A stretch of DNA of 64,000 nucleotides from Bugula neritina (lineage: Eukaryota > Animalia > Bryozoa): positions 33,346,773 to 33,410,772 of the forward strand of contig OZ037766.1 in the NCBI GenBank assembly GCA_964035545.1, in the 5' to 3' direction. Made by a program: the position numbers and the translations under genes. The number at the start of each line of letters is the position of its first letter. Position 1 is the stretch's first letter. Of this stretch, positions 3,001-30,434 are shown piece by piece. The notes beneath the pieces are model-generated. The model had not been told where the DNA came from. It was given only the letters and a program-made list of their open reading frames with translations, and did not search any database.

Positions 3001-6000
3001 GGAGAGGCTGAGAGACGAGCTGACGGAGAAGACGACCATGTTGAACAGGATGCATACGGAGCTGGGGCGGAGAGACAAGACTATTGCTCGTCTGGAGGCG
3101 GAGTTACAGCTCCAGTCAACCCACTCCGGTGACGTGAGTCTTTAGTCTGTGTAGTAACCAGGAGTTGTTCTCCCTGTACGCTGGCTATAAGGACAGGCAA
3201 CTCTTGTAGTTGTTCTCTCTGTACACTGGCTATAAGGACAGATAACTCTTGTACTGTAGTTGTTCTCCCTGTACACTGGCTATAAAGACAGATAACTCTT
3301 GTACTGTAGTTGTTCTCTCTGTACACTGGCTATAAGGACAGAGAACTCTTGTACTGTAGTTGTTCTCCCTGTACACTGGCTATAAGGACAGATAACTCTT
3401 GTACTGTAGTTGTTCTCTCTGTACACTGGCTATAAGGACAGAGAACTCTTGTACTGTAGTTGTTCTCCCTGTACACTGGCTATAAGGACAGATAACTCTT
3501 GTAGATAATCAAATCACTGGAGCTTCAACTTTCCACTACCAAATCTAAACTTTCAGACGCTGAGCAGAAGTCAAGTCCGGGTCAAAGTTCAAGCAGCAGT
3601 CCGTCCACAACCCTCTCCCGCAGACTCGATCCTAAGGTACAGCTTTGCGGCATATTCAGCACAATAGTTAGAGTTATCTTTCCTTTATACTCTCAGTTAG
3701 AGTTATCTCTCCTTTATACACTCAGTTAGAGTTACCTCTCCTTTATACTCTCAGTTAGAGTTATCTCTCCTTTATACACTCAGGTAAAGTTATCTCCCCT
3801 TTATACTCTCAGTTAGAGTTATCTCACCTCTTTACTCTCAGTTAGAGTTATCTCTCTTTTATACTCTCAGTTAGAGTTATCTCACCTCTTTACTCTCAGT
3901 TAGAATTGTCTCTCCTTTATACTCTCAGTTAGAGTTATCTGCTCCTGTCGGCGAGGAAATCAAAATGGCGGAGTCAGCTCTTGAGAGTCTGAAATGTTCG
4001 AATCCCGGAAACTCTGTGAACATCGAGTTACTGGAGAACGCGTTTGTTGCCATGGTAACCAGAGTGAAGGAAGCTGGCAAACAGCCAGCCAAACCAACGG
4101 CTGAGGTGAAAGGTCATCAGGTTCTGAGCCGCCCCCCACCTCTGCAGAAGAGAGACTCGACTAAGGTGATGAGTTACTCGGCTAAGAGGTCTCTCTCTAC
4201 AACATTGTAATAGCATGTTATGTAATATAATATAATAGTATGTTATGTAATATAATATAATAGTATGTTATGTAATATAATATAATAGTATGTTATGTAA
4301 TATAATATAATAGTATGTTATGTAATATAATATAATAGTATGTTATGTAATATAATATAATAGTGTGTTATGTAATATAATATAATAGTATGTTATGTAA
4401 TGTAATATAATAGTATGTTATGTAATATAATATAATAGTATGTAATATAATATAATAGTATGTAATATAATATAATAGTATATAATATAATAGTATGTTA
4501 TGTAATATAATATAATAGTATGTTTTGTCAACAGCTGCTGTGTTTCTGCTCCAACTCTGTTACACCTTCTATGAAGACGGTTCAGAAGAAGTTAGGGGAG
4601 ATAACTCTTAGAGATTACAAATCTGCCTTTTCCTCTGGTCATCTCTTAGAAGGGGGCAACTGTATACGTCTGCGGTAAGTATATAATAGTATATCAGAGA
4701 GTAAGTATATCAGAGAGTAAGTATATCAGAAGGTAAGTATATCAGAGAGTAAGTATATCAGAGAGTAAGTATATCAGAGAGTAAGTATATCAGAGAGTAA
4801 GTATGTCAGAAGGTAAGTATATCAGAGAGTAAGTATATCAGAGAGTAAGTATATCAGAATGTAAGTATATCAGAGAGTAAGTATATCAGAGAGTAAGTAT
4901 ATCAGAGAGTAAGTATATCAGAAGGTAAGTATATCAGAGAGTAAGTATATCAGAGAGTAAGTGTATCAGAGAGTAAGTGTATTAGAAAGTAAGTATATTA
5001 GAAAGTAAGTATATCAGAGAGTAAGTATATCAGAAAGTAAGTATATCAGAGAGTAAGTATATCAGAGAGTAAGTATATCAGAGAGTAAGTATATCAGAGA
5101 GTAAGCATATCAGAGAGTAAGCATATCAGAGAGTAAGTGTATCAGAGAGTAAGTGTATTAGAAAGTAAGTATATTAGAAAGTAAGTATATCAGAGAGTAA
5201 GTATATCAGAAAGTAAGTATATCAGAGAGTAAGTATATCAGAGAGTAAGTATATCAGAGAGTAAGTATGTCAGAAGGTAAGTATATCAGAGAGTAAGTAT
5301 ATCAGAGAGTAAGTATATCAGAATGTAAGTATATCAGAGAGTAAGTATATCAGAGAGTAAGTATATCAGAGAGTAAGTATATCAGAAGGTAAGTATATCA
5401 GAGAGTAAGTATATCAGAGAGTAAGTGTATCAGAGAGTAAGTGTATTAGAAAGTAAGTATATTAGAAAGTAAGTATATCAGAGAGTAAGTATATCAGAAA
5501 GTAAGTATATCAGAGAGTAAGTATATCAGAGAGTAAGTATATCAGAAGGTAAGTATATCAGAGAGTAAGTACATCAGAAAGTAAGTACATCAGAAAGTAA
5601 GTATATCAGAGAGTAAGTATATCAGAAAGTAAGTATATCAGAGAGTAAGTATATCAGAGAGTAAGTATATCAGAGAGTAAGTATATCAGAAAGTAAGTAT
5701 ATCAGAAGGTAAGTATATCAGAAAGTAAGTATATCAGAAGGTAGGTATATCAGAGAGTAAGTATATCAGAAAGTAAGTATATCAGAGAGTAAGTATATCA
5801 GAGAGTAAGTATATCAGAGAGTAAGTGTATCAGAAGGTAAGTATATCAGAAAGTAAGTATATCAGAAGGTAGGTATATCAGAGAGTAAGTATATCAGAGA
5901 GTAAGTATATCAGAGAGTAAGTATATCAGAAAGTAAGTATATTAGAGAGTAAGTATATCAGAGAGTAAGTATATCAGAAAGTAAGTATATCAGAGAGTAA

Positions 6001-6207
6001 GTATATCAGAGAGTAAGCGTATCAGATAGTAAGTATGCCAGAGAGTAAGTATATCAGAGAGTAAGTATATAAACTGATTGCAGATACTCATTCAAGGCGC
6101 AGGACCCGGAGTTCGGTACGGTGAAGGAGGAACTGTCGGAGGACACTGACCTCGTACCCGGCTGGGAGGGGAAGGTGATTGGCTGGATTGAGGAGGACTT
6201 GGCATAG
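1..6207 (+). CDS. DIXDC1: Dixin (coiled-coil + C-terminal DIX domain, Wnt pathway), 5'-truncated
   Basis: Phase-compatible GT-AG exons: <1-23, 493-623, 1366-1547, 1974-2129, 2948-3133, 3505-3636, 3929-4165, 4535-4674, 6084-6207 (TAG). Coiled coil [27 protein letters not shown] and C-terminal DIX domain [59 protein letters not shown] closely resemble DIXDC1/Ccd1 as I recall it. Confidence 0.93.
50..420. repeat. Polypyrimidine microsatellite (CCCTCT)n/(CCCCTC)n/(CT)n
   Basis: Direct reading; Dixin intron. Confidence 0.95.
763..1326. repeat. 21-bp minisatellite, ~27 near-perfect copies
   Basis: Unit CTCCCTACCTGCTTCCCTCT-like (SPYLLP repeat ORF); Dixin intron. Confidence 0.95.
1553..2925. repeat. 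Two intronic minisatellites (15-bp, 1553-1955; ~27-bp, 2145-2925) flanking a Dixin exon
   Basis: Units TACACATGCTATACT and ACAGTGATAGTCTAAAGTGTAATATAATAT-like. Confidence 0.92.
3162..3503. repeat. 50-bp minisatellite ending at the acceptor
   Basis: Unit GTACTGTAGTTGTTCTCYCTGTACACTGGCTATAAGGACAGATAACTCTT. Confidence 0.92.
3667..3940. repeat. 29-bp minisatellite spanning the intron/exon junction
   Basis: Unit CTCTCAG|TTAGAGTTATCTCTCCTTTATA includes the acceptor and the first 12 exon bases. Confidence 0.92.
4675..6070. repeat. 16-bp minisatellite of splice-donor copies (~85 units)
   Basis: Unit GTAAGTATATCAGAGA fills the intron that splits the DIX domain. Confidence 0.95.
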
Positions 6208-9164
6208 TGCCAACTCCGTGAGTCATGCTTGTCTACTTATACATCCTGTCATGTGATATACATATAATTATACTGGTATAATATATATTGTACTGTTATA
6301 ATATATATTATACTGGTATACTATATATTATACTGTTATAATAATTATTATACTGGTATAATATATATTATACTGGTATAATATATATTATACTGTTATA
6401 ATATATATTATGCTGTTATAATATATATTATACTGTTATAATATATATTATACTGTTATAATATATGTTATACTGTTATAATATATATTATGCTGTTATA
6501 ATATATATTATACTGTTATAATATGTATTATACTGTTATAATATATATTATACTGGTATATAATATATATTATGCTGTTATATAATATATATTATGCTGT
6601 TATATAATATATATTATACTGGTATATAATATTATACATATTGTGTGATGTACTTCAAATTTTGTTATATGCCCTTTTTCTCTATTTTATTCATTACTTG
6701 TGGTTTATTTACTTCACAGCCTGAAGAACCACTACAAACTCTTTGATCTCAACTGCTGCGGGGGGGCTCAACCGCCCTCAAAGTCGGCCAGGGTGACTAC
6801 GCAACCTCAGCTAATGTCAGGACAAATATTTAGTCATTTGGTTATATTTTTCTATTTATTAGTTTGTGTTTTTGTTACCGGGTTATATCTCTGTACAGAT
6901 GTGTGCGATCGTTCTCCTTCTGCTATATTACTGTATTACCATATTACTATATTACCAATATGCTACTATATATTACTGTATAGTACTGTATCATTATTGT
7001 AGATAATTATTTTGTATTCTTCACACTCTTCTTTGTGACAGTCTCGCCATTTCTGATTTGCCTCTGAACAATCTAAAAATATGAATTTTAATATATTTTC
7101 ACTTATTGGTTCAAATTTGTACTGCAGCTAGAAATCTAGATGACTTAGTTTATACATTTTAAATCAAGTAACAACTTGTAATATTATTTTTAATATTTCA
7201 AGACTTGAAACGAAATAAATACCGTAATGTGCTAGCCAATACTGTGTTCAGTTTGTTCACCCGCCTTGCACACTCTACTATCACATGTCAACTCTCTCAC
7301 TTTACACACTCTACTATCACCTGTCATCTCTCTCACTCACCTGGTTTACATGATATTGTTGCCCAGGATTCTTTTATAACATAGCTTGTAGTGTAGGTAA
7401 AACTAAGTGTCTATTCAGCAGACTATAACAAATATCATTGGCCGTCAAGCCATAGGCCTAACATATGCATTCAGATTATGTTTAGGGGGTGCAGACACAT
7501 CTCTTAGTAAAAGTCAAAGAGCTTGCTTGCTGTTAGCTTCAACTCTGCTACAACCTATGCTTTAACACACTTTGATGCTCCAACTTGGCTGTAAGTACCA
7601 ACTCTGCATTCAGTCTACCACCTCCAACATTAGCTAAGAGTTTGCAATTTGGAAGCCAAGACGAACTGTTAGGAAGAGTATATTGCAGACTGCACTCTCC
7701 CACACCTCACACGTGTACTAGTTTACTCAGTATATACTCATTGAGCAGCTGCCAGCTTGACTTGTCACCACGGAGACAAGATGCTATTCTACACTCATAT
7801 ACTACAGCTATCTATTGTTTGGACCAAACTTACGTGTGAATTACTCCATTTAATGTTTATCCACTTGGCCACGCCAGCTAAAGTGGCCATAAAACAATAA
7901 AACTGATAAATCTAAACTCTTGAAAGATTCTCAAAGGCCGTGTGTCATCGCACCGTGTCATCGGTCGCAGTTCTTAGTTCTGATAAACGAATTTCATTTG
8001 CTTTCAGGTCTTGGGTCTATCATTACTAGTTGGCTCAGAAGTTTAACATATGACAACTATAATATTTACTTTTACACTTTGAATTAAAAAATAAGTCAAA
8101 TATTTATTTAGTTTACTTTTTTTGTATTTTGTTAGGTATAGTAAACTGTTAATTTGCACAACAAAAGTGATTATGCAAGCATCAGTGAGCAAGAAGTAGC
8201 TAATTATTCTGCCCTGAAGGTAACTGGCATCATTTCCATAGCTGTGTATATCTAAGCTGCATCTTTCTATAGTTCATTCATGTTACTTTTCTGAAATAAT
8301 TGCACTCCTATGATGTTATAGAGCACTTATGTCTTGTAGTTGATTTGTGTCACTTAATAACTTAGCATTGTACCAGTTCAATACTGGTTGGTGTATGGGG
8401 AGGGTAAGAGCACCACCCAATAAATACACTTTAGTAAACACTGAGCTTCCCAATAATATTCACTGTGGTACCTTTTCAGTAGAAAATATTTAATATAGAG
8501 ATTTGAAAACAACTAGTAAAAACTATTTTATATATCCATTACTAGTCACATGACTAGAGGCATTATTTATATACAACATGTTTTAATAAAAAAATATTTA
8601 AAATAAACTCTAAATATAGTAAAATTCGTTAATGACATGTTCAGTGTAATGTAACAAATATATAATATTATCATGCACACGCAAATATTATTACAACATA
8701 AAATGTCAAAAACTTAATGACAGTACAAGTCTAAATTTTCTGCTATAAACAAAAACATAAATTGTTTTACAAAGCACTAAACCAGCTTGTGTAGTGAAGC
8801 GTGAGTGAATGTGACAACCAAGTTGGCCGATAGCTCCTTGTGGCTGAAGTTTGTTGAAGGAGTATACAAGTTAGGAGAATATCAAGTGAGCGTCTGTCAT
8901 GCGCTGTCGTATTTCAACTCATTCATGTGTTATTCCTGCTGACTCTAACTTAACAGATCTTGTGCTGACTTTCTCATGAATATCCGAACTATTATTCTTA
9001 CAGCATACAATCATATTATTACTATATTATAATATATTATAACTATACTATAATATATTATTACTATATTATAATATATACCATACCGAATCTAAGTTAA
9101 ATATTCTATACAATATAGCCATCAGAGATATAGTAATACTAACAGGCAGGAAGTTAATGTAACA

Positions 9165-12100
9165 TTACAACGAAACTAAAGTATTAGAGCTGCCAGAAAT
9201 GTCAGGATGTGAGATCATTTCCTGTGTGGTAGACTCGGCACACTCACTGGAACTCGGCGAACCTTTAGACTCTGTGTCGGTCACAAACTTCTCGCCCCCT
9301 CCTTTCTTTTTGATAAGTTTTCTTTCCTTAGCTCGTCTGTTTTGAAACCATATTTTTACCTGAAAAATCCAACAGCAATCGACAATCAAAGGGATCCTCT
9401 GGGGGATTTAGTATCAGGGGTCTACTTTTAGGGGGTACTATATTAGGGGGTGCTAAAATCGGTCTGCAATAGATGAGAGGTTACTATTAGGAGCGTATAG
9501 TATAGATGAGAGGTTACTATCAGGAGTGTATAGTATATAGATGGGGGTTGGTATCAGGAGCGTATAGTATAGATGAGGGTTGGTATCAGGAGCGTATAGT
9601 AAAGATGAGGGTTGGTATCAGGAGCGTATAGTATAGATGAGGGTTGGTATCAGGAGTGTATAGTATATAGATGGGGGTTGGTATCAGGAGCGTATAGTAT
9701 AGATGAGGGTTGGTATCAGGAGCGTATAGTATAGATGAGGGTTGGTATCAGGAGCGTATAGTATATAGATGAGGGGTTACCATTAGGAGTGTATAGTATA
9801 GATGGGGGGTTACCATTAGGAGTGTATAGTATATAGATGGGGGTTGGTATCAGGAGCGTATAGTATAGATGAGGGTTGGTATCAGGAGTGTATAGTATAT
9901 AGATGGGGGTTGGTATCAGGAGCGTATAGTATAGATGAGGGTTGGTATCAGGAGCGTATAGTATAGATGAGGGTTGGTATCAGGAGTGTATAGTATATAG
10001 ATGGGGGTTGGTATCAGGAGTGTATAGTATATAGATGGGGGTTGGTATCAGGAGCGTATAGTATAGATGAGGGTTGGTATCAGGAGTGTATAGTATAGAT
10101 GGGGGTTGGTATTAGGAGCGTATAGTATAGATGGGGGTTAGTATCAGGAGTGTAGTAGTCTGTGAATTACCAACAGGAAATGCTGAATCTGTAAACATTT
10201 GAAAGCTGCCACTGCTGCTGCCAGAGCATTATTTCTGGTAGAAATCAGATAATTTTAGCATAAATGATTAATACAAGTAATCATAGTCTTACCACTACAG
10301 TTATACCAAAGATAAGTATGCTGCTGAGAAATTACAGCGGGAAACGGCTAGAACAAAAGCTAGGAAATTAAACACCTTAATAATTGGTTAATTAATTGGC
10401 AGGCAGGCTTAGCAATAAAAAAGTAATAAAAAAGTTGATTATAGATTGCGAAGAGCTGTCTGTTATATCCCTCTGGCAGCAGAAGGTGGAGCAAGGCAGC
10501 AGATGTGGGTGTGTAGAGAGGGTCTGCGTTTATATAACAAAGTCAGCTGTACAGTGGAACACATATACAATGGAACACATATACAATGGAACACATACAC
10601 AATATGTTCACTATAAATGATGCCAAACTACCACTTTTAAGAGTGATGGGTTTTTGTCAAAAGAATATTGATTATTCTTAAACAACAAACTAGAAAGCTG
10701 AATGCTGTCTATACTGACACTAAATTGAGATTTTAATGGTAAAAGAAAATACTCATTTAAATTGAATTTAAATTAATTATGTGCTGAAATTTGATTGCAT
10801 AACATATTTCTTTATTTCAACTACCAAAATTGCGGCAATTACCATATATATTCAAGTTATAATAACAACCACTATTAACAACTTCAACATTAATTAGTGA
10901 ATAGTGTATCAAGTGAAAGAGTTTTACGGAACTTGTCATTCTCAGAGAGGTTAATGTAACTCACCTGTCTTTCGGAGAGGTTGAGGGTAATTGCAAGCTC
11001 AGCCTTGCGTCTTATTGTTATGTAACGACTATAGTGGAATTCCTTTTCTAGTTCCAGTCTCTGGTGGTCGCTGTATACAACTCGGTATTTGTCTTTCGTC
11101 CTAGTCTTACCTGCCAAACATAAGTATAACTATAGTATTACCTGCCAAACATAAGTATAACTATTATAGTAAACTTATAGTATTACATCACATTATATGC
11201 ATTTCTCAAAAGATGACAGAATGGGTTGGATATTAACAGAGATAACCAACTCAGAGATCTATCTAACCTAATATGTACATGTTTATCTTTAATTCTAACC
11301 ACTGATTTACATAAATTGTATTAAATTAAACAATATAGGTAAAAGTATGCTTTGTCAGTAATTTTAAGCTGACCGGGCTTTAAAGCTCAAGATTGTTTTT
11401 TATTTAGTTTAGTTCTTATTTTGGTTATTTTAGTTTTATAATGACTTCTGCTACAAAAAATCTTTCATGTAAAAAATTAAAGTAAAATTCACTCAACTCA
11501 TTTCTATTTTTGTCAGGGCATAACAAAATATTTAGAAATTCTAACTGCGACATGCAAATTACGAAACAAAAGTAATACTGCCTTATATGGTTGTACGTTT
11601 TCACATCTCTAATGTGTTCTAACAGATCATTAACTGAATGACGTCAAGAAAATTATTTGTAATTTATATTTAGCCAACATCTTGATATTGTTATAGATGT
11701 TCCTTTTTATAATGGAGTATTTTGCTATATTATATTATATTATAATATTATGTTATATCATATTATATAATCATATACTATATATTATATGTTAAGTTAT
11801 ATGTTATAGATCACTAGTTCATTTTTGCTTTATGGATTGTTATAATATTATAAAAAAGCTGTCATCCTTGTGGAAGGGTTTTTTTTTTAAATCAAGCTAA
11901 GGATTTATTCAGATGGGGCACAGGAGCAATTATGACTGGATGCTCCTCTTAACATCACCAATGGCCTTTGTCGGGTCCGAACCCATAACTTCGTGTTTAC
12001 TAGGCAAACGCTTTAACCCCTAGACTACGGCTGCGCCCTATAGATTATTATATTATATTATATTATATTATATTATATTATATTATATTATATTATATTA

Positions 12101-15100
12101 TATTATAATATTTTATATTATATTATATTATGTTATACTATATAATATTATATTATATTATGTTATACTATATAATATTATATTATATTGTTTTATACTA
12201 TATTGTATTATATTATATTGTTTTATACTATATTGTATTATATTGTATTGTTTTATACTATATTGTATTATATTATACTCAACTGAATTTATAGCTGCTT
12301 ATATATAAAGATTTTAAAGGCAGAAACCTGCACTTCAAATTCAAACTTTGACACACTGATTTATACTAAAATGGGTATTTGAATAATTTCATAGACACTT
12401 GATATTTTATTTTCTAAAGCTTTGAAACTGCTAGTGAGAATAAATTGATACTGCAGTTCAGGTAAACTCTGTTTATAAACATGGATTGTATACAAGGCAT
12501 GAGTACAATCACTTCATGTAGACATGTATACAACACTGTAACAATAGCCAACTTCAAACATCATTGTTTATTCATTGTTGATAAATTTGTAATTATCCAA
12601 ACTTTGAAAAGGTTCCGCCAATTAGTAAAGACTCTGGCTGTATATTGGCTGAGCACAAAGCCTTGTGCTGGCAGAGTGGTTATACGTGAGTAAATAGGGG
12701 AATAGTATGACAATTTCCATAAGATGAGCAAAGAATTACGTAAGATCTTAGCTATGCCAGCTACAGTCTACTCTGCTCAATAGACTAGTCAAAAGAAGTT
12801 AATAGAGAGCATTTCTCTAAATTAGAATTCATTTTCCAATAATTAAAGTTTGTGGCTGATCAAAATATATGATATTCAGAGAATGCAATACCACTGGCCG
12901 CTGACAGGTTGCTGGCAGGTTGTTAGACGCTCACTAAAAAGATACCTTTGTATAGGTTTTTTTTCCCCTTTCCTTACAGCCTGACGTTTGTTTAGAGAGC
13001 TAAACGTGCACTCAACTATAAATATTTAAATTGATTTGACTGATGATGTAATCATACATAATTTCACTCAAACTCTTAATGGACAGACAGACAGACAGAC
13101 AGACAAAATACCAGCTTGTAATACTTTTAGGATATATGTGTTATATACGAATATATATATAGCGTAATAATGTAGACCACTAATAATATAATATTTCATA
13201 TTAAATCATTAACCATCAAAACCAGCTACACAGCACTACTATATTTATGTTCATGTTCTGCAAATAGTCATGTATACAATTTGTTTTTGACTTTCATGTA
13301 TTTCCGTCATGAATAACAGATGTAAGGAAAATATACCTATTGAAGATACGCAATGCCTCCATTCCACAAGTGCCCCACTTACACTCTGATAAGCTTCAAA
13401 GACAAATGAATACACACGTTATTTAAACAGTTCTGCCGGCACTTTAAAACCTGATAAACTAAACAGTAATTTTCGTGAGAATTTTCTGTCAAGTTTTCTT
13501 ATCAATTGCGTTTATGTTTAGTTCCTTGAAAAAAAACAAAGAATTCAATGATTTCGGGATTATACAGTGGAAATAAATGAAACCATTATTAAGGCATATT
13601 ATTGAGGTTTGAGATGAGAAAAAAATTCTAGTTCAAGTCAATTAAACATTCAGAGACTTTGAAATCTCTGCCGAAAAAAAGTTCTCTTCAATGAGAAATA
13701 ATATTGGAAGAGGATCCAAAAAGTAAAAAGGTTCTATAAATAGTGATTATTACATACAGCTTCAAATTATATATAACATGTTATAGCTAATAATATATTG
13801 TATATTTCATAATATATATAATATATAACATGTTATAGCTAATAACATATTGTATATTTCATAATATATATAATATATAACATGTTATAGCTAATAACAT
13901 ATTGTATATTTCATAATATATATAATATATCTATTGCACGCAGTTCTCTCACCATTAAGTTCTGTGCTATTTAATCCACACTCGCCTACTTTGAAGGGAA
14001 GATACAGTTTGAGGTGCAATTTTGAGAATTCACACTTAAATATGCAGCTTGATGGTGGCAATAAAATAATACGGGCAATAAATTAGACCGATAATCACAT
14101 CATTTTGACTTGTAGCTACCTATTGCTGCGTACAATAAACAAGCATTTTATTGTGCTAAACAGTCTTGGTATATACACAGATTTACCCATTTTATTGGGC
14201 ACTTGAAATGAAAAGTTGTTCAACTGCATAATTAACCGTTTTTATTGGGTTTCGGGAATTACCTTGTTTGAATTTTTGTATCCATATCATAAAATGGGAA
14301 CAGGAATAATGCAACTTTTTATCAACTTGTCAGAATTTTCTAAAATGATTCAAATATATGAACATATACTTTTAAAAATTATGATATAATTGTTATTTAA
14401 TTTTTTGATTTCTATTCTTCGTCTCTACTTTTTGAAAAAAATTTTCAAATAAATAAAATAATAGATATATTACTTTTCATGAGTACAACATGCAGCATAC
14501 TCGAAGAACTACAGGTGAGCCCCTAACAGCCACCCTTTTCCTCCCCCCTAATATATATATAATACTTACAGTTATTAACATAATATATATAATATTTATA
14601 GTTACTTTCATATTATATATAATAGTTACAGTTATTAACATAATATATATAATACTTACAGTTATTATGATATTATATATAATACTTACATCTATTAACA
14701 TATATTATATCTAATACTTACAGTTAATAACATATATTATATATAATACTTACAGTTAATAACATATATTATATATAATACTTACAGTTAATAACATATA
14801 TTATATATAATACTTACAGGTAATAACATATATTATATATATATAATACTCACAGTTATTATTCAGGCTGCTGTTGATCCAGCCAGAGTAGTTTTGACTT
14901 TGCTGCCTCTCTTTCAACATCTCGTCTTCCATGTTATGCTGATGAGTCGTGACCCCTTGACTTCCTGTGGCCATGATGGCGCAGGGCGAGTAGTGAGTTG
15001 CCGGATGACCTTGACTAATGAGGTCATTCTGCGGATGAGTCGGGAAGTAACCCGGATGTTTGTACACAATGTCAGCTGACTCGATGTTAGTTTGATACGG

Positions 15101-15349
15101 CAGCGTATTACTCCAGCCAGAATGGGGGTAGTGAGGAGTGACTGAGTCATCTTTCCCTGACGTCTGCTGCCAGTAAGTTCGGTTATAGTGCTGCTCGTAG
15201 TATCCCGTAGAAGATGTGTCCACCTGAGCAGCTGTCTGGTAGGTGGGGGGTGCGTAGGTCTGAGAGACGCTGTACATGGCTGACGTAGCGTTCCTTGTGT
15301 ACATGCCTGCTGTCTCGTAGTCTATGACTTGCCCCTCGTAGTGCACCAT
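9165..15349 (-). CDS. Cdx: Caudal/Cdx ParaHox homeobox protein
   Basis: Exons 15349-14854, 11110-10965, 9359-9165. Homeodomain [48 protein letters not shown]|[14 protein letters not shown] is diagnostic of Cdx, with the usual intron at Q|V. The Tyr-rich N-terminal exon has a hexapeptide-like YSGW. Confidence 0.97.
9470..10155. repeat. ~28-31-bp minisatellite in Cdx intron 2
   Basis: Unit GGTATCAGGAGCGTATAGTATAGATGAGGGTT-like. Confidence 0.9.
11879..12038 (-). mobile_element. tRNA-derived SINE in Cdx intron 1
   Basis: Minus strand reads GGGCGCAGCCGTAGTCTAGGGGTTAAAGCG (A-box-like) ... GGGTTCGGACCC (B-box-like), then a non-tRNA body, AATAAA and an A10 tail. Confidence 0.75.
14057..14248. promoter_or_regulatory. 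Cluster of six CAATAAA (Cdx/posterior-Hox-type) motifs in Cdx intron 1
   Basis: Motifs at ~14057, 14074, 14132 (+) and 14146, 14190, 14240 (-) in otherwise non-repetitive sequence. Confidence 0.45.
14550..14860. repeat. ~30-bp minisatellite spanning the Cdx exon-1 donor
   Basis: Minus-strand units AATAACT-GTAAGTATTATAT.. copy the true junction AATAACT|GTGAGTATTATAT. Confidence 0.85.
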
Positions 15350-15505
15350 GCTATGTATGATGTGAAGCACTCTTGCTACGTACTTCCACTTCAACTCGTC
15401 TGCAAACCCTCACTGATATCTTCACCAGTATTTATTTGAAAGCAATAAAACAAGCTGGTAAGTCCAGGTAGCGTGTATTGTGAATGGAGGCCGTGTGTGG
15501 GGCAA

Positions 15506-19674: not shown

Positions 19675-22600
19675 TCATTTAATTGACTCGTAGATGTGAC
19701 TGTCTCGACTTTCTAGCGATAAGTCTACAGGTTTCAGTTCAGCTAGTCGTGGTTCCTGCCTCTTGTCTTCACTGATATTGTTGGCTGGCAGTAAATAGTC
19801 CTCTTCTCCGTCTATGGTTTCTAGACTACTTCGTGCACCTGGCCCTCCATGCCCTCCATGCCCTCCATGCTCTCCCTGCTCTACCTGCTCCTGCTGTCTG
19901 TTAGATGGTGGAAGATTTATTTCTGTTTCAGTTTTACTCTTTGTTATGATATCGTCCTTTATAGTAGAGTCTTCATTTTGTGGTTTAATATTCTTTATAA
20001 TGTTTTTATCTTTAAAAAGCTTTTTGTCAGGTTTCTGCTTAGTATTTGAGTGAAAGGGCCCTGGCACATAAATGTTAGTAGCTGCACTACCTGGTTCACC
20101 TGCATTACTAGGTTTACCTGCATTACTAGGTTTACCTGCATTACTAGGTTTACCTGCATTACTAGGTTTACCTGCATTACCAGGTTCACCTGCGTTACCA
20201 GCATCTTCATCAGATGTGGACGCAGACGGCAAGGAGTGGATGTCACTGCCTAAGGACTTAGGGGGTACACCAGGTGGAGTGCCCCTCTGAGGTTGTAGAT
20301 AGTTTTCTACTGGCTTCTCATTCTCATAGCACAAATCCGGCTCTGAATCTGAGTCAGAGTCGAATATCCGCAGATCCAGGTGAGAGTTGTGGTCTGCCAG
20401 GTTTTCCGGGGGATTCACATACACGGCAACCAATCCCTGGTCCTCGTCATCTTGTGAAGCTTTGTCAGTTGTGGCTTCTGGCATCGGGTTCATGACCAGG
20501 TAGTCGTGTGCTGCTTCTGCTCCTTGAGGAAACACTTTGGTGTAGCCATCTTGATCTTGATCTAGTAAGTAAATATGAGTCCATGAGTCACTGTGAGTCA
20601 CTGTAAGTTACTGTGAGTCACTGTGAGTCACTATGAGTCACTGTGAGTCACTGCGAGTCACTATGAGTCACTGCGAGTACCGTACATGTTTGCAGGTATT
20701 AGCTGGATTCAGTAACATCTAAGTTAGTAGAATCTATAACTCAGCACCATCGGCCTTGTATAGTAATATAGTAATATAATAATATAGTAATACAGTACTA
20801 CAGTAATATAGTATTATAGTAATATAGTAATACAGTAATACAGTAACACAATAATACAGTAATACAGTAATACAGTAATATAGTAATATAGTAATATAGT
20901 AATATAGTAATACAGTACTACAGTAATATAGTAATATAGTAATATAGGAATAGTGAGATATATACTATATACACTACTATATAATAATAGAGTAGTAATT
21001 GTGAATTAGTACGCACCTCGTTTCCTCCTTTTGCATTTTATGCAAAAGACAACCAAACCCAAAACAATTCCTAGCACAACTAGCACAGGCACAACTATAA
21101 GTGCAACTAATTCTGATGTGGTGAGACCGACCCATGTGATGAGCCAGGTGAAAGAGACCTCTTTACCTGCAAATGTTTAATAAAACGAAAATCATGCACC
21201 TGAGTACATTATTACATGAGAGCATATCAGATATAATACATAGTAGCTATGTACACTCTACAGAAACTAAACACAAAACATAGAGTAATATAATATAATA
21301 TACTGAGTGATGTAATATATTATACTGAGTAATATAATATAATATACTGAGTTATATAATATAATATACTGAGTAATATAATATAATATACTGAGTTATA
21401 TTATATAATATACTGAGTAATATAATATAATATACTGAGTTATATAATATAATATACTGAGTAATATAATATAATATACTGAGTAATATAATATAATATA
21501 CTGAGTTATATTATATAATATACTGAGTAATATAATATAATATACTGAGTTATATAATATAATATACTGAGTTATATAATATAATATACTGAGTAATGTA
21601 ATATATTATACTGAGTTAGTAGTGGTACGCGTCTCGCACTCACCAACACCGTTGTTAGCAATACAAGAGACGTTCACAATAACTTGCTGCCCTATAAACT
21701 TCACAATCTGGGTGTCTGAGGTACCAATGCGTGCTTCATCTCCTATAAATTTCCAGCTGAAGTTCTGGGGTGAAGGTCGACCAATTATGTGCTCCGAGCA
21801 TACCAAGCTGTGTTTCTTATATCTCTGTAGCTTCTCATGAACCTCTGGTTCATTCACTAGGTCAAGGTCTGGGAATATGAACAGAAATAAAATAAAACAA
21901 CCAGAATCATCTCACATCTAATCTGTAGTAAAACACACAAATGATGACAAAGCCTGCAGAAATAGTATTTTCCTTAATTTTATATATTTTACTTTTAGCA
22001 TCAAACATGCGATTCAAATAGTAAAACAAGTGGGGCATCCGTGAAGCCTTCCCTGCAGTTGCATAGGTGAAAGTTGAAAGAAACCGACTTACAGCTAGGG
22101 AAGACCTTTCTATTCAAGTAAGTATTTCCTCCTTTCCAAGTAGAATGTACAGTGTCTTCACACGATAGCATAACTCCTTCTCTGTTCGCTTTCTCCAGTG
22201 TAAAACTTGGATTTACTTCCTTTCCATTGACCTCTACAGAATATATGATATCTCAGTGCTATATACTCTCTACACTCACTGTATATACTCTCTACACTCA
22301 CTGTATATACTCTCTACACTCACTGTATATACTCTCTACACTCACTGTATATACTCTCTACACTCACTGTATATACTCTCTACACTCACTGTATATACTC
22401 TCTACACTCACTGTATATACTCTCTACACTCACTGTATATACTCTCTACACTCACTGTATATACTCTCTACACTCACTGTATATACTCTCTACACTCACT
22501 GTATATACTCTCTACACTCACTGTATATACTCTCTACACTCACTGTATATACTCTCTACACTCACTGTATATACTCTCTACACTCACTGTATATACTCTC

Positions 22601-23895
22601 TACACTCACTGTATATACTCTCTACACTCACTGTATATACTCTCTACACTCACTGTATATACTCTCTACACTCACTGTATATACTCTCTACACTCACTGT
22701 ATATACTCTCTACACTCACTGTATATACTCTCTACACTCACTGTATATACTCTCTACACTCACTGTATATACTCTCTACACTCACTGTATATACTCTCTA
22801 CACTCACTGTATATACTCTCTGCACTCACTGTATATGTATTTAGACTCAGGGTCAGAAGCCTCAGACTGGCAGCTAAAGTTCAATTCTCTCCCTTCTTCA
22901 ACTTGTGAAGGATTCAACAGCATTGTGAGATTGGCTGGAGCAACTGAAAGGAGAGCAGACACATGTTGTGTGCATTTACCTCACCCCCTTTCTCTTAAAT
23001 ATACGTATAGTACATAGTAAAGCATAAGTATAGTATATAGTATAGTATATAGTATAGTATATAGTATAGCATATAGTATAGCATATAGCATAGTATATAG
23101 CATATAGTATAGCATATAGTATAGCATATAGCATAGTATAGTATAGTATATAGTCTATAGTATAACATAAAGTATAGTATATAGCATATAGTATAGCATA
23201 TAGTATAGCATACAGTATAGTATAGTGTAGTATAGTATAGCATGCAGTATAACATATAGTATAGTATATAGTATATAGTATAGTATAGTATAGCATGCAG
23301 TATAGCATGTAGTATAGCATATAGTATAACATATAGTATAGTATATAGCATAGTATAGCATATAGTATAGCATGTAGTATAGCATGTAGTGTAGCATAGT
23401 ATAGCATAGTATAGCATAGTATAGCATACCTCTTAAACCACCATCTTCCAGATCTGTGTCCTCAGAGTAGTAATGAACTCCGACACTGTCATTGGCAGAG
23501 CATGTGAACTTTCCAGCAGCTGACCTGTTTGTGATTTTTATTATTGTGGAGTAGACAAAGCCCTGAGTCCTACCAACAGAGGCGCAGTCTGAGGGCGGTG
23601 TAGGGGCAGTATCAACTATACCCGCTTCAGTTTTACCAAGGGTTGAGGGGATGGGGTACCAGAAGCTGTTGTTCAAGTAGCACCCCGTCTCGAAAACACC
23701 ACCATTCTTCTCGGAGAACTGGAAGGCAACCTCTGTTATCCCTGAGAGTTGAGTGAAGTCGCACGAGAAAGTTATGTTGGTGTGGAGGTAGAAGTTCTTG
23801 TCTCCCAGACTAGTGTAGGTGAGGGAAGGTTGGATTTTACTCTCAGTCACTATAATTATGGACAGCCAAAATATTCCAGTTAAATGTGTCCTCAT
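19675..23895 (-). CDS. Type I transmembrane Ig-superfamily receptor (atypical V-like + two C/I-like domains, TM, ~295-aa tyrosine-motif tail)
   Basis: Exons 23895-23430, 22943-22830, 22233-22093, 21868-21644, 21166-21017, 20561-19675; all introns phase 1 and in frame. Signal peptide MRTHLTGIFWLSIIIVTES; Ig Cys pairs ITFSC..GKFTCSA, LNFSC..MLSC, LVC..VSCIANNGVG; TM LVALIVVPVLVVLGIVLGLVVFCI followed by KCKRRKR. Confidence 0.85.
22260..22836. repeat. 22-bp minisatellite of donor copies (~26 units)
   Basis: Minus-strand unit ATATACA|GTGAGTGTAGAGAGT reproduces the exon end and donor at 22830/22829. Confidence 0.93.
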
Positions 23896-24272
23896 TCTAA
23901 AACATAAATTAAATAAAACACTTGTATTAAGGCACTGCTTGTTTACAGTAAGTGACTATATATATACTATATACAGTTGGCTTACTTACAGTAAGTGACT
24001 ATATACATACAATAATATAGCTTACTTACTTACTTACATTATAATATACTAATTTTCATGATGCTGTTTTAAGTGTTGATATATAAATAGTATATTCCTA
24101 TATTCTTATTATAATGCCCTGCATTTACAATGTTCAAGTATATAGCATATGTTATTTCACATCTATTTCACTATTACGTTGCAAAAGAATTTGATATAAA
24201 AGTAGATGTAAGCTGAATAGGCTTCTGGCATATTTTATTGTAATGCATGATTTATGGAAGTTCTATAAATAA

Positions 24273-24925
24273 TACCAATACACTGTAGCTACACAGTATT
24301 AACAATACACTACACTGTAGCTACACAGTATTAACAATACACTACACTGTAGCTACACAGTATTAACAATACACTACACTGTAGCTACACAGTATTAACA
24401 ATACACAACACTGTAGCTACACAGTATTAACAATATACTACACTGTAGCTACACAGTATTAACAATACACAACACTGTAGCTACACAGTACTAACAATAC
24501 ACAACACTGTAGCTACACAGTATTAACAATACACTTCACTGTAGCTACACCGTATTAACAATACACTACACTGTAGCTACACAGTATTAACAATACACTA
24601 CACTGTAGCTACACAGTATTAACAATACACTACACTGTAGCTACACAGTATTAACAATACACTACACTGTAGCTACACAGTATTAACAATACACTACACT
24701 GTAGCTACACAGTATTAACAATACACTACACTGTAGCTACACAGTATTAACAATACACTACACTGTAGCTACACAGTATTAACAATACACTACACTGTAG
24801 CTACACAGTATTAACAATACACTACACTGTAGCTACACAGTATTAACAATACAATACACTGTAGCTACACAGTATTAACAATACACTACACTGTAGCTAC
24901 ACAGTATTAACAATACAATACACTA
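24273..24925. repeat. ~32-bp minisatellite (~20 copies)
   Basis: Unit ACACTGTAGCTACACAGTATTAACAATACACT; contains the imperfect hairpin ACTGTAGCTACACAGT. Confidence 0.92.
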
Positions 24926-25872
24926 CACAGATCAGTCATCAAAACTCCTCCGACTATTTGACCTTCTATCAAGGAAGGGGCTAGTCACCATCAAGGAAAT
25001 TAGTTTAAGATGTTTAGCTACTCCTTTCACAGTGAAATGTAAAACGTTATACAATAACTTTCTGTTGGTATTAGATTTCCATTCATGTTAAGTATTCTAC
25101 CATAATGTACATGTGACTAGCATCAAGAGCTTCTAGAGTGAGGGCTCCATTATCAGTGTACTGAGTTGAGTTACAGTATATACTCCCTCAAACCAACATC
25201 ATTATGTGAGTCAAAGACTTGAATAGAACCAGTAGCTATATATGACCAACACAGTCATACGGTATATTATTATACAGTATTATATGACCAACACAGTCAT
25301 ACGGTATATTATTATACAGTATTATATGACCAACACAGTCATACGGTATATTATTATACAGTATTATATGACCAACACAGTCATACGGTATATTACTATA
25401 CAGTATTATATGACCAACACAGCCATGTAGTAGGGTTTGGTAGAGGAAAGTATAGTAGTGCAAGGGTTGAGTCTGAAGCTGCATTATTTTGAGGCCTAAA
25501 TTCAGCACCCAGTAAAGGCACATATTATTCTCAAAGCCTGAATAACTTGGTAATGCTGCAGCATGCCTGCTAATGATAGCGGTGATGTAATAATATACAA
25601 CTATATACAATATATAGCAGTATAATCTACAACTATACAGTATAACAGTACAATATACAACTATACAGTATAACAGTATAATCTGCAACTATACAGTATC
25701 ACAGTATAATATACAACTATACAGTATATATAGCAGCATAATATACAACTATACTGTATAGCAGCATAATATACAACTATACAGTATAACAGTATAATAT
25801 ACAACTATACAGTATAGCAGTGTAATATACAACTATACTGTAAATGTCAACTTAGTACAACATGATCATATA

Positions 25873-27186
25873 GGGGTAACGGGGGGGGGGGGGGGGCACA
25901 ACGGGCCGAATTTTACATTTGTTGCTCTTATTCGTCTGTTTTTCAAGTTACTAGTTCAATAATCTCTAGTCTTAATGCTGCATATGTTGTCTATTACAGG
26001 TACCAGTTTGTTGTTTCTATCTCTCACACAACTTTCAGAATAATGAAATTTTCATGACGAAAAAATTGGCCCATTGTGCCCCGGTACCGGGGTACAATGG
26101 GCCACTGGGTGGGACACAACAAATATATTGAAATTTTGCGAATTTTGCTACATCTGATCTTTATTTATTTATTATTACAAATAAATAAAGATACTCTTTC
26201 AGATCTACAGCAAAATTCATGTTATAGCTGTACAATTTGTGCCACTATGGATAGCAGAGGAAGGCAAAATCAAACGCACGTCACTCGGTTCTGCAGTGCC
26301 ATTATCATTACTGTTTAAAACTAAAAATGTTCTCTTATTTTCACCTCAGAGGAACGTTTATCAAAAAAAACTTTAGTAACATGTACTACAAAATTGCGAG
26401 TGGCCTTTTTTCTATGAACTGTAGCTAAGGTGCATGGCTGAGGTTTGTGATTGGAGTACGGAAGGGAGAGAGGGGAGCAAATGAGCAAATCACAATTTAT
26501 TTTAGTCAAATACACGTATATTCCCTCAATGGTGTAATATATAATGAATATCATGACTATCTACTAGTAGCAAGTAGCAACAGCAGAGTGTTTTGTATTA
26601 TCTATAAAATGGCAAAGCTTTAACCTCACCAGATGTATATATTAGGGAAGCTTCAACTTTTAGTTTTGTAGTCTTACCATGATGTCTTTGATATTTTACA
26701 AAAAGGTTAGAAATGGCTATATCTATAAATTTTAGTAACATTTCAATCAACTTTTTGGGCAAATAAACTAATAACAGTAATCAGGGTGCAATGATCAGGT
26801 GGCCCATTGTGCCCCGGTCAGCGTGGCCCATTGTGCCCCGTGTGGCCAAACTGAACATAAATGTGCCTCAAGGAAAATTTATTTCAGAGTTTGCTGTTAT
26901 ACTAATTAAGCAATGTAGAGACAAGCAATGGCAACAATATCAGTAAAATATAGGCTTCTTGCCTTTGAGTGTAAAAAGTTATAAAGCTTTAACGACATCC
27001 TAAAAAATTTACAAAAAGTAGGTAAAAACAGTTTTTTACTCGCCTTTTCAACATGTATGTTCCGCAAGTGTTGAAACTACAAAGGCTGAATAATTATGTC
27101 AATATCTTTTTATGAAACAAAAATAACAACTCTAAGTCAATAAGTTCTCTCATAATTTGGCCGGCTTTTTGTACCCCTATGACCGT

Positions 27187-27219
<33 letters not shown>

Positions 27220-27227
27220 GTTACCCC
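25873..27227. mobile_element. Non-autonomous TIR DNA transposon (Tc1/mariner-pogo-like MITE), copy A
   Basis: TIRs GGGGTAAC(G)nCACAACGG ... CCGTTGTG(C)nGTTACCCC flanked by TA (25871-72, 27228-29). No transposase ORF. Colinear with the reverse complement of 47114-48418. Confidence 0.92.
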
Positions 27228-28328
27228 TACTGATTATATATTCATTTATATGTGCAATATAGGTGAAACTTTAATGACCGAAGTTTTTACTGCATATTGA
27301 TAGAGTGCCTTATAGTATTATCATACTGATATATACTGATATGATATTACTATACTGATATATACTGATATGATATTACTATACTGATATATACTGATAT
27401 GATATCACTATACTGATATATATTGATATGGTATGTAAGCTAGCGAGAGGAATAAAGTAGTACCTGTGATATTTCTCTAGTTGTAGTGAGAAGTAAATAC
27501 AGAGTGAAGTCAAACAAGGAACTAACTACATAGTTTAGCTGCTATTAGAGCTACTTAACACTTTGACCTAGATAAAAGCCTTTCTCTATGCAGCTTTGTT
27601 GGTTTAATAAGTGAAGTGATTCTAATCAAATATTGACATAAGGTTAACTTATATCGCAGAGTCTCACATTCCTATTGTATTCAACACCATATTATATGTT
27701 TGCTGGATAAGTATAATATTTATATACTCTGTCACTATACAACATATTTGTGTGGTAATATAATATGCTACCTTACTAGTTACTATGTTTCCATGAAAAT
27801 GCAAGGAAACACTGTTGCTCTGACAATACATGAAAATAATTTATGTTGGGACTTTACATAAGCTGGGAAAGCTTTTCCCTAATACATGATAGCTTTTCAC
27901 ATATCATCTCAGCTATATTCTGCTTTTCCACTTTTATTATAGCTAATACACAAAAGCTAACTTTTTTACTACTATAAAAACCCAGCAGTTTTTCACTTAT
28001 CCTTATAATAAATGTTTATGTCTCTAACTTAAAACACAATAGCTTTTACTTTAGAAAACCACTTCTTCAAGCTATTAGAATGAACTTATGTAACTGTATG
28101 TTAAATAGGATTGTTAATGCGATCTAAAAATTAAGAACAATAAAGCCATACTAAAAATTTAATGATGTATACCACTATTATTAGATGAATATAGGTATGT
28201 GTGAATGCAATGTTATACAGTCTACTCTCTACACGATCTTCTCAGTGAGTGTACAGTAGAGTTGTCTGTCCTATTGAGCTATTCTGCATACTAAATACAT
28301 TATCACAATGAGTATAGAGTTGTCTGTC

Positions 28329-30434
28329 CTATTGAGCTATTCTGCATACTAAATACATTATCACAGTGACCATAGAGTTGTCTGTCCTTTTTCTTCCACC
28401 ATTAGCTGTAGTTTCATCATCTTTACCTGTGTCGTGTGGTGAGTCATTTGTTGAATGACATTCTGAGTCTGCAACATATTAGTGCAACAATATAATACAA
28501 TAATACAATACAATAATATAATACAATAATACAATACAATATTATAATACAATAATACAATACAATAATATAAGACAATAATACAATACAATATCATAAT
28601 ACAATAATACAATAATATAGTACAATAATATAATACAACTATATATATACTAATAATACAATATAATACTACACTCATATCACAATATAATAATAATATA
28701 CACATAATACAATATAGTAATAATATACACATAATATAATATAATAATATACACATAATACAATATAGTAATAATATACACATAATATAATATAATAATA
28801 TACACATAATACAATATAATAATATACACATAATACCATATAATAACATACACATAATATAATATAATATAATAATATACTAATAATACAATATAATAAT
28901 ATACACATAATACAATATAATAATATACACATAATACAATATAATAACATACACATAATATAATATAATAATATACTAATAATACAATATAATAATATAC
29001 ACATAATACAATATAATAATATACACATAATACAATATAGTAATAATATACACATAATACAATATAATAATATACTCATACTATAACCTGTGATTTGGTT
29101 GATGCTGACTACAGAGGATGACACCAGCTGACTTTTCCCCTCCTCGCTACCAACACAGTACAATCTCCCTGTAGACACTGACTCTGATATGGAGAGTTCT
29201 AGCTGGAGGTTAAACCCTCTCGAGTCACCCTTATAAGAACAATAACTCGACAGAACGCGAAGTCCTTCTACGCCATAATTTACTGACGGACTGAACACGT
29301 TGACGCTCTCCCACCCACCCTCCGACTTTCTCCGACAGCCCGCGTATATCCGCACACTCTCGTTGTAGTCGTATCTGAGAAGTAGAGACTGGAGGTTTGT
29401 GAAGTCTAGCGGTAAGCACTCTGTAGTGAACGTCTGCTTCTTGGAGCACATGCTGATCTGGAGGGAGGGCTGAGCTGCAACAGCACAACCAATCATGTAC
29501 TGGCATATTTATCAAAGTAGCCATTTAGCATGTTCTAAGCATTCATAAATGTAAACACTGGGCTTAGGATTTGTTTCTTATTATAATAAATTCATTAATT
29601 AGAAGTTGTTCTCACATGTTATCTCAGAAAACTCGGCACTTCTAGAAGACACCATCCCAGCTGACTGCCCATATCCCACGCAGAAGAATGTTCCAGCTAA
29701 AGTCACGCTGTATTCTATGAGTAAGGCAACATGGATCCTGAACCCAGTGACGTCACCCGTCCAATCACAGTAGTCTAAGGGATCCACAAGGCTTTCAACA
29801 CCCTGGATGTAGTTGAGGTCGGAGTCTGGTATACCGCCCCAATATCCTTGGTCAGATTTAACGCAGCCCGTTTCTATTGAGGGTCGTCTAGGATAGTTGT
29901 ACTGCAGTGCCAACTTAATGAGGTCACTGAACCCGGATGCTGTGCATGTAAAGTTAACATCATGTTTGCCGTTGGCTGTCACAGCTTTCTTCACCTGATA
30001 CAGCATTTCAACTCTGGGCTCTGCAACTAAAAGCAATTTCATTAAAGCAATAAACAACTTTTATGTGTTTATTGATATTATATACATGTATTATGTAATT
30101 ATCGTGTAAGACTGAGATATATTATAATATATACGATATAATATAATATATGCATATTTACACTACAAATATAATAACCCCATGCAGCCATATAGGCTGC
30201 ACAAATAAATAAGTAGCAAGTGAATTAATATAATCTATTCCTGAAATAACCTTAATTGTTACAAGAAGACTGTCTCATATTCATAATGACAATGAGTTCA
30301 ATCATGTATTAGATATAATATATTCTGTAAAACTTACCAGCTGCTCTAGTCGGTAAACAAAGGTAAACCAACAGGTAAACTACAGCGCAATAGCTGTTAG
30401 ATAATTTTATTCTAGGAGTTGGCACTGCGGACAT
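28329..30434 (-). CDS. Two-domain Ig-like protein, probably GPI-anchored
   Basis: Exons 30434-30338 (signal peptide MSAVPTPRIKLSNSYCAVVYLLVYLCLPTRAA), 30026-29616, 29474-29088, 28468-28329; all phase 1. Each middle exon encodes one domain (VNFTC..ETGC..W..YC..GF..GTFFC; TTEC..YAGC..W..YC..GF..GRLYC). C-terminus ..TTANGGRKRTDNSMVTVIMYLVCRIAQ* resembles a GPI signal. Confidence 0.8.

Follow-up and report, generated by a model that had tools for sequence, protein, structure and literature searches.

We analyzed a 64,000-nucleotide (nt) stretch of the genome of the bryozoan Bugula neritina (GenBank assembly GCA_964035545.1, contig OZ037766.1, here contig C2, C2:33346773-33410772; hereafter the window), in which two adjacent minus-strand genes, between window positions 30434 and 19675, encode divergent immunoglobulin (Ig)-like domains with four Cys residues. 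We consider it probable that these genes, designated gene B and gene A in order of reading, are two neighbouring single-copy members of a large Ig superfamily (IgSF) receptor family, itself undescribed, which comprises more than 100 domain exons and has so far been seen only in bryozoans. A preliminary description of the locus had proposed a signalling receptor paired with a glycosylphosphatidylinositol (GPI)-anchored decoy or ligand for allorecognition or immunity; the structural insight of that description holds, but its biological reading does not hold on present evidence.

A four-cysteine domain shared by three exons

Ten coding exons were read on the minus strand from 30434 to 19675, with every junction between them in phase 1. 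Three of them, encoding D1 and D2 in gene B and D3 in gene A, are ~130-residue domain exons, all phase 1-1, and each carries in full the pattern that had been described, namely a B-strand Cys, L-x-L/F-x-Y/F without a Trp, GC-x6-7-W, C-x6-7-GF and G-x-F/L-x-C; the shared pattern is thus real. All searches and folds were run on single exons. Pairwise phmmer comparisons within a small local set of open reading frames (ORFs) gave E ~5e-14 for D1-D2 and ~7e-6 for D1-D3, indicating similarity beyond chance, and the three domains are homologous, with identities of 30% (D1-D2), 20-21% (D3-D1) and 15% (D3-D2).

The four Cys are invariant in both of our family alignments (20 and 27 members), G112 is invariant in the 20-member and nearly invariant in the 27-member alignment, and the Trp following the second Cys, which is the sole conserved Trp, is nearly invariant in both. 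In strand C, where the Ig fold normally has its core 'pin' Trp, these domains have a Leu almost without exception (L41 of D1). For D1, D2 and D3, Pfam returned no family at E up to 1, with V-set, I-set and ig profiles all unmatched, and a profile search against PDB sequences yielded only marginal Ig matches at E ~0.1 (Ig domains of MDGA1, JAM and PirB). With no Pfam match and database relatives labelled 'uncharacterized', the earlier remark that no named family is recognised for the domain is borne out.

Predicted fold and a probable second disulfide

AlphaFold2 models built with the family alignments were all-beta with 9-10 strands, for both D1 (predicted local distance difference test, pLDDT, 82; predicted template modelling score, pTM, 0.80) and D3 (pLDDT 87, pTM 0.81). 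Exhaustive structural comparison of these models with 48,161 PDB chains returned, as the top 20 or more matches, nearly all V domains, aligned over the whole domain (99-115 residues, root-mean-square deviation 2.6-3.5 Å, Z 8-9.3) and including T-cell receptor (TCR) V-alpha/V-beta/V-delta, CD8, the first domain of nectin-2/-3 and nanobodies. Since Z values of up to 9.3 for D1 and ~9 for D3 are barely above the background of 7-8 stated for the comparison tool, the case for a V fold also draws on how consistently V domains were hit, on the Cys pair of strands B and F, on the G-x-aromatic-x-C motif and on the phase 1-1 exons. Foldseek concurred, with Ig V matches at E ~2e-4, and the language-model neighbours of the domain were Ig clusters; a shape search of the ESM Atlas returned generic beta sandwiches only. 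These predictions suggested that D1 and D3 are V-type two-sheet beta sandwiches inclusive of strands C' and C'', as had been proposed from the sequence.

Among 56 distinct full-length domains of this genome, 53 contain four Cys, one lacks the first Cys only, and two are without both inner Cys (pattern CxxC), having lost that pair jointly while keeping the outer one; loss of just one inner Cys was found in none of the 56. The first Cys is accordingly present in 55/56 and the fourth in 56/56, with both residing in the predicted B and F strands. That the inner Cys are invariant in the alignments and, where missing, are lost together supports a second disulfide, also anticipated in the preliminary description; most likely, C1-C4 would be the canonical B-F bridge and C2-C3 would join strand C' to the segment that precedes strand E.

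A large family among bryozoans

Searches of the 216-Mb assembly with single domains gave 51 and 45 matches, and a profile search recovered at least 104 domain exons, mostly on contig C9 (0-4.2 Mb) in several sub-clusters, with others on C1 (3.74-3.82 Mb, 5.21 Mb) and C4. Paralogue clusters, for which a profile search had been recommended, are therefore present, mainly on C9; for C2, the profile returned D1, D2 and D3 and, besides these, a single distant match that was weak. In the family tree, D1, D2 and D3 reside on long unresolved branches, with none of them the closest relative of another.

The standard layout of the family, as exemplified by the C9 paralogues L041 and L040, comprises a V-like exon, a first Ig domain split over two exons (Ig1a and Ig1b), a second Ig domain (Ig2), a transmembrane (TM) exon and a tail, and a family gene on C1 is arranged as V-V-Ig1a-Ig1b-Ig2. 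In L040 (C9:3186000-3194000), the tail (553-957, minus strand) contains seven tandem DNS-x-Y-T/I-E/D-L/M units, of which two are strict immunoreceptor tyrosine-based inhibitory motifs (ITIMs; SPYTEL and SLYTEL), and the V-Ig1a-Ig1b block is repeated ahead of the full gene. Another C9 locus, L034 (C9:3155000-3163000, minus strand, ~2880-6700), harbors at least 8 tandem four-Cys V-like exons spaced ~500 bp apart, several with frameshifts or stops; it could be a multi-V gene with decayed copies, resembling the protein KAF6036352.1 described below, or an array of alternative or pseudo-exons.

Outside this assembly, only 57 of 1.84 billion representative proteins matched the profile at E up to 0.001. 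Most of these are short ORFs of metagenome or Logan origin; the long proteins align only over the generic F-strand region, and the full-domain matches that were traced were all on Bugula-type contigs or in bryozoan-named proteins, in agreement with the lineage specificity suggested earlier. Named members, all uncharacterized, are KAF6030178.1 and KAF6036352.1 of B. neritina and XP_067939839.1 of Watersipora subatra. Of the six V-like domains that KAF6036352.1 has in tandem, one is all but identical with a copy on C9. In Watersipora, ten or more paralogues are present, the majority of them on a single chromosome; in most, a signal peptide and a single four-Cys domain are followed by a pair of Ig domains, a TM segment and an ~88-residue tail with five Tyr. 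Pfam detected only an Ig_3 domain in the Watersipora protein, and one Watersipora paralogue has been auto-named NCAM-like. Judged from these searches, the family is large and has so far been seen only in bryozoans, and our literature search found no paper describing it, nor any on recognition or immune receptor genes of bryozoans.

Gene A as a transmembrane receptor

Gene A has the standard layout of the family, namely signal peptide, V-like domain, two Ig domains, TM segment and Tyr-rich tail. Its first coding exon (23430-23896, minus strand as are all exons here; coding part 23430-23895) begins with an ATG at 23895 and encodes the signal peptide and D3. The first Ig domain is divided between an exon with the A-B strands and a Cys (22830-22943; a weak Ig_3 match at E 0.07, with the same exon of paralogues at E 1e-6) and one with the E-F-G strands and a Cys (22093-22233; paralogues at E 5e-11, Watersipora P0054 at E 5e-6), and the second Ig domain (21644-21868) matches the Ig2 exons of paralogues, its counterpart in P0054 being a Pfam Ig_3 domain (E 4.5e-7). 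Altogether, the Ig and TM exons of gene A match those of C9 paralogues at E 1e-6 to 5e-11. The intron separating the two halves of the first Ig domain is made up of 26.5 copies of a 22-nt unit (22252-22836), with CAG and then GTGAGT in each copy.

Consistent with the TM signalling receptor originally proposed, the TM exon (21017-21166) encodes an uncharged helix and then a KCKRRKR stop-transfer sequence, and is followed by a tail exon (19675-20600) of 308 residues with nine Tyr. The acceptor of the tail exon sits within 9.5 copies of a 10-nt CAGTGACTCA unit (20584-20678) and is in frame only in every third copy, and the tail itself contains coding minisatellites, with 6.5 copies of an 18-nt unit encoding PSNAGK repeats (20082-20198) and a 9-nt unit encoding GHG repeats (19842-19890). 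Gene A is atypical of the family in two ways: one exon encodes both its signal peptide and its V-like domain, and its tail is unique, having been found once in the genome and having given one low-complexity match only in a database word search. Among the Tyr motifs of the tail are two YxN (YVN, YEN) and one YxxM (YLVM), and the C-terminus reads YESI. An ITIM is lacking from this tail, as are immunoreceptor tyrosine-based switch and activation motifs (ITSM, ITAM) and a PDZ-type or other known adhesion-family ending, and the TM helix has no charged residue.

On our reading, gene A encodes a type I membrane receptor with a long, probably disordered tail, and we surmise that its V-like domain binds a ligand at the cell surface. 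The tail would then be phosphorylated on Tyr and recruit Src homology 2 (SH2) adaptors, since it carries two YxN motifs, as bound by Grb2, and a YxxM of the kind bound by PI3K-p85, but neither an ITIM nor an ITAM. The hallmark of the family is an N-terminal V-set-like domain which keeps the B-F disulfide, has a Leu in place of the core Trp and carries a second invariant Cys pair, most likely a bridge from strand C' to the D-E region.

Gene B and its relation to gene A

Gene B begins with an exon (30338-30434, minus strand) that comprises an ATG at 30434, preceded three nt upstream by a TAG, and a signal peptide, ending in a phase-1 donor (G|GTAAGT); the ORF of the orthologue L044 is intact. 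The D1 exon follows at 29616-30026 (minus strand, phase 1-1, with an alternative acceptor possible 6 nt downstream at 30020), and the D2 exon at 29088-29474 (minus strand, phase 1-1), whose phase-1 donor (G|GTTATA) is weak but shared by the orthologue. The GPI anchor claimed for this gene is not upheld. Past the end of D2, translation in the same frame runs on for 140 codons without a stop, and the hydrophobic ILLYCIMC-like sequence that it yields is a minisatellite with a 24/48-nt unit (28489-29086); the frame is not conserved in the orthologue, which has a 4-nt indel right after the D2 boundary and a stop three codons on. Because of the minisatellite, together with this indel and stop, we regard the stretch after D2 as non-coding, and the presumed GPI tail is most likely a translated intron repeat.

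A C-terminal GPI signal consists of small residues at the omega site, a short spacer and 15-20 hydrophobic residues that run up to the stop. A scan between D2 and D3 for phase-1 terminal exons with a hydrophobic end gave one weak candidate (28134-28240) with a poor GAG acceptor, for which a pattern scan of metagenomes found no orthologue. The 5.2 kb between D2 and D3 contain no remnants of Ig or TM exons, and region 8-136 of the open frame of D2, used in a word search, gave no match at 150-478 residues. Decay of gene B into a pseudogene was rejected, given three exons with open frames at an omega (dN/dS) of ~0.2. As it stands, gene B would comprise a signal peptide and two V-like domains without TM or Ig exons of its own, its product most likely being secreted or otherwise separately finished, with the alternative that it serves as a second 5' module of the same locus.

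The start of gene A bears directly on this alternative. Orthologous contigs were available from another Bugula taxon at a DNA identity of 81-87% (JGI 3300002729, JGI 3300003318 and run SRR4020080). In an intact orthologue (P0068/L049, JGI 3300003318), the ATG, the hydrophobic signal peptide and D3 are in one frame, and the sole in-frame acceptor of the window inside the D3 exon (23850) is absent. Since the ATG and signal peptide are conserved in frame and the acceptor at 23850 is not, gene A starts independently. A YAG acceptor located 1 nt before the ATG of gene A (window 23896-23898; L049 ~440) is also conserved, as are the ~40 nt upstream of the ATG (90% identical), and a minisatellite precedes this acceptor in both taxa, as with introns of this genome; taken together, these features suggest that gene A probably has an upstream non-coding exon. 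Splicing of D2, or of any phase-1 exon, to the conserved acceptor would add one codon and then a TGA overlapping the ATG of gene A (ATGA); gene B ending in this manner within the first coding exon of gene A, a further reading that we consider unlikely, would give a two-ORF transcript, encoding a secreted V-V protein and then its membrane relative.

These data argue for two neighbouring genes as the likely arrangement, and we lean, at somewhat better than even odds, towards two genes with gene B either secreted or finished by a small unrecognised exon. Less favoured, yet still to be reckoned with, is one complex locus in which the three exons assigned to gene B (signal peptide, D1 and D2) on the one hand, and the exon for signal peptide A and D3 on the other, are alternative 5' modules on shared Ig-Ig-TM-tail exons. 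Such a locus fits the absence of separate Ig, TM and terminal exons for gene B from the 5.2 kb between D2 and D3, and it finds a parallel in the C1 paralogue (V-V-Ig1a-Ig1b-Ig2); with all junctions in phase 1, D2 could be joined in frame to Ig1a, and the acceptor and minisatellite ahead of the D3 ATG are intron-like for this genome. However, D3 has its own conserved signal peptide, and the routes from D2 into the D3 exon fail, either for want of acceptor 23850 in the orthologue or through the stop after one codon at the conserved acceptor. A single V-V-V-Ig-Ig-TM protein is accordingly improbable, and a continuous V-V-V reading frame was ruled out as the main model on the non-conservation of acceptor 23850; that gene B is a relic is more improbable still.

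Selection, variation and the question of recognition

Comparison of the window with the orthologous contigs by the Nei-Gojobori method gave an omega of 0.22 for D1 (dS 0.24), 0.23 for D2 (dS 0.30) and 0.24 for D3 (dS 0.39), with 0.19 for the exon of signal peptide B and 0.11-0.58 for the Ig exons. This indicates purifying selection on the three V-like domains between the two Bugula taxa, and the intron of gene A, at 76% identity between taxa vs. 84-91% for exons, is less conserved than the coding sequence. Two alleles of the sister taxon differ unremarkably over 2.2 kb, by ~1% substitutions plus indels (96.7% identity), and a second allele over D3 was not seen in the contigs of one DNA run, which is weak evidence. 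From the between-taxon omega and these two alleles, neither the extreme polymorphism nor the diversifying selection of an allorecognition determinant was apparent. One of these two alleles, the orthologous contig L043 (JGI 3300002729, ~520), has a 32-nt frameshifting deletion in D3 with loss of the first Cys, the D3 of L049 being intact; the deletion is either a null allele, possibly segregating, or an assembly error.

The cluster paralogues evolve faster, with an overall dN/dS of 0.54 among 33 close C9 copies, reaching 0.86 in the 17 columns after the second Cys (C'-C'') vs. 0.49 elsewhere, in comparisons between paralogues whose pairs are non-independent. With this faster C'-C'' region, more than 100 domain exons, clustering on C9 and tandem ITIM-like tails in some members, one may ask if the four-Cys family as a whole is to bryozoans what recognition systems of the Alr, KIR or FuHC type are to other animals, with the window genes as non-polymorphic outliers; we hold this broader proposition to be unlikely for now.

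For the window genes themselves, the proposal of a signalling receptor with a GPI-anchored decoy or ligand draws on the same background of a lineage-specific, expanded and clustered family in a colonial animal, with fast-evolving cluster paralogues (dN/dS 0.54; C'-C'' 0.86), some of which have tandem ITIM-like SxYxx[L/M] motifs. In vertebrate paired receptors, near-identical ectodomains are joined to opposite tails, one with an ITIM, the other with a charged TM residue. Here, D3 shares no more than 20-21% of its residues with D1 and 15% with D2, with no sister relation in the tree, and hence the two genes do not constitute a matched pair of receptor and decoy or ligand. In addition, the purifying between-taxon omega of 0.22-0.24 speaks against a role in self/non-self recognition, as do a tail without ITIM or ITAM and the genomic position of the locus, which is flanked by a Cdx-type homeobox gene and PLRG1 and belongs to none of the clusters. 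The uncharged TM helix, the minisatellite origin of the 'GPI' tail and, to a small degree, the missing second D3 allele likewise disagree with it. The B. neritina genome paper mentions just weak Alr1-like similarities (PMC7576161), which fit a recognition role. On balance, we find paired receptors at this locus very improbable.

A more conventional possibility is that these genes encode a housekeeping adhesion molecule of the nectin/JAM/CTX type (V + C2-type + TM), epithelial or neural, without any part in the recognition of foreign cells. The V-Ig-Ig-TM layout, the first domains of nectin-2/-3 among the best structural matches, the single-copy conserved orthologues under purifying selection and the NCAM-like auto-name of one Watersipora paralogue are all compatible with it. 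Against adhesion stand the lack of sequence-level relation to any named adhesion family, the unique tail without a PDZ-type or known adhesion-family ending, and an orthologous allele that is apparently broken. Adhesion of this kind is, in our estimate, rather unlikely. The genes are not orthologues of Beat/Side, DIP/Dpr or nephrin, the neural adhesion families named in the preliminary description as what would refute its proposal.

We thus favor two single-copy members of a bryozoan IgSF receptor family, and the following observations weigh against this interpretation: 1) the disulfide pairing was deduced from residue conservation; 2) the D2 donor (GTTATA) is weak, though conserved; 3) D1-D2 could splice to the Ig exons of gene A, as in the V-V-Ig-Ig gene on C1; 4) one RNA-like 'symbiont metagenome' run (5% of words) had no contig on the D3 exon (23429-24263); 5) a metagenome scan with the gene A tail found no orthologous tail with which to compare the Tyr motifs; and 6) gene A may be dispensable, given the frameshift in L043.

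Genomic surroundings

The window has ~33% GC, and its introns are rich in minisatellites, in keeping with eukaryotic DNA. Genes A and B are flanked by the Cdx-type homeobox gene (~9-15 kb) and PLRG1 (~46-48 kb), outside the family clusters. The Cdx/caudal-type gene lies directly downstream of gene A, with exons at 9168-9407, 10893-11129 and 14804-15409 (minus strand) and a homeodomain split over two exons. Positions 1-2000 of the window form a GC-rich block (53% GC, GC skew -0.6) with several long microsatellite and minisatellite arrays.

Comparison with known Ig systems

The four-Cys domain resembles the Ig V-set (TCR V, CD8, nectin D1, VHH; PF07686) in its predicted nine-strand sandwich, with ~100-115 residues aligned at Z 8-9.3, its B-F Cys pair, a G-x-aromatic-x-C motif ahead of the F-strand Cys, an N-terminal position in a type I receptor and a phase 1-1 exon. 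In contrast to the V-set, it has no Pfam match, replaces the strand-C core Trp with an almost invariant Leu, lacks the Asp of D-x-G-x-Y-x-C and carries two additional invariant Cys, one in C' and one ahead of strand E.

The clustered KIR, LILR, SIRP, CD300 and Siglec genes are likewise multigene Ig receptors, and some members of the bryozoan clusters share their repeated ITIM-like motifs; unlike them, the window genes differ widely in their ectodomains (15-21% identity), with neither an ITIM nor a charged TM residue in gene A and no TM helix in gene B. Closest are the bryozoan relatives, with XP_067939839.1 of W. subatra and its paralogues, KAF6030178.1 and KAF6036352.1 sharing the same four-Cys V-like domain and, in Watersipora, the layout of gene A, but at ~20-30% identity to D1-D3, with unrelated tails and, for KAF6036352.1, six V-like domains in tandem.

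The Alr genes of Hydractinia offer the nearest parallel in an invertebrate, also being a clustered and expanded IgSF set in a colonial animal, with an atypical V-set-like N-terminal domain that profile libraries miss, a TM segment and tails with Tyr motifs. According to Huene et al. 2022 (PMC9546547), neither of the two core Cys nor the Trp is present in domain 1 of Alr, whereas the bryozoan domain keeps the core Cys pair and adds another; in addition, no Fn3-like exon was seen, so that the domain departs from the published Alr features, and the profile search yielded no named relative of the domain outside bryozoans.

Implications for bryozoan biology

Bryozoans are a colonial phylum in which colonies fuse with or reject one another. 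With the present analysis, a domain signature, a gene layout and genomic clusters are now defined for a large IgSF family that profile libraries have missed, providing concrete candidates for colony recognition, immunity or adhesion in these animals. The textbook Cys-Trp-Cys rule for V-type Ig domains, already broken by Hydractinia Alr, is broken by this family as well, which makes it the second such case. The locus in the window is a conserved outlier of this family, and the C9 clusters are the more promising ground for finding polymorphic recognition genes.

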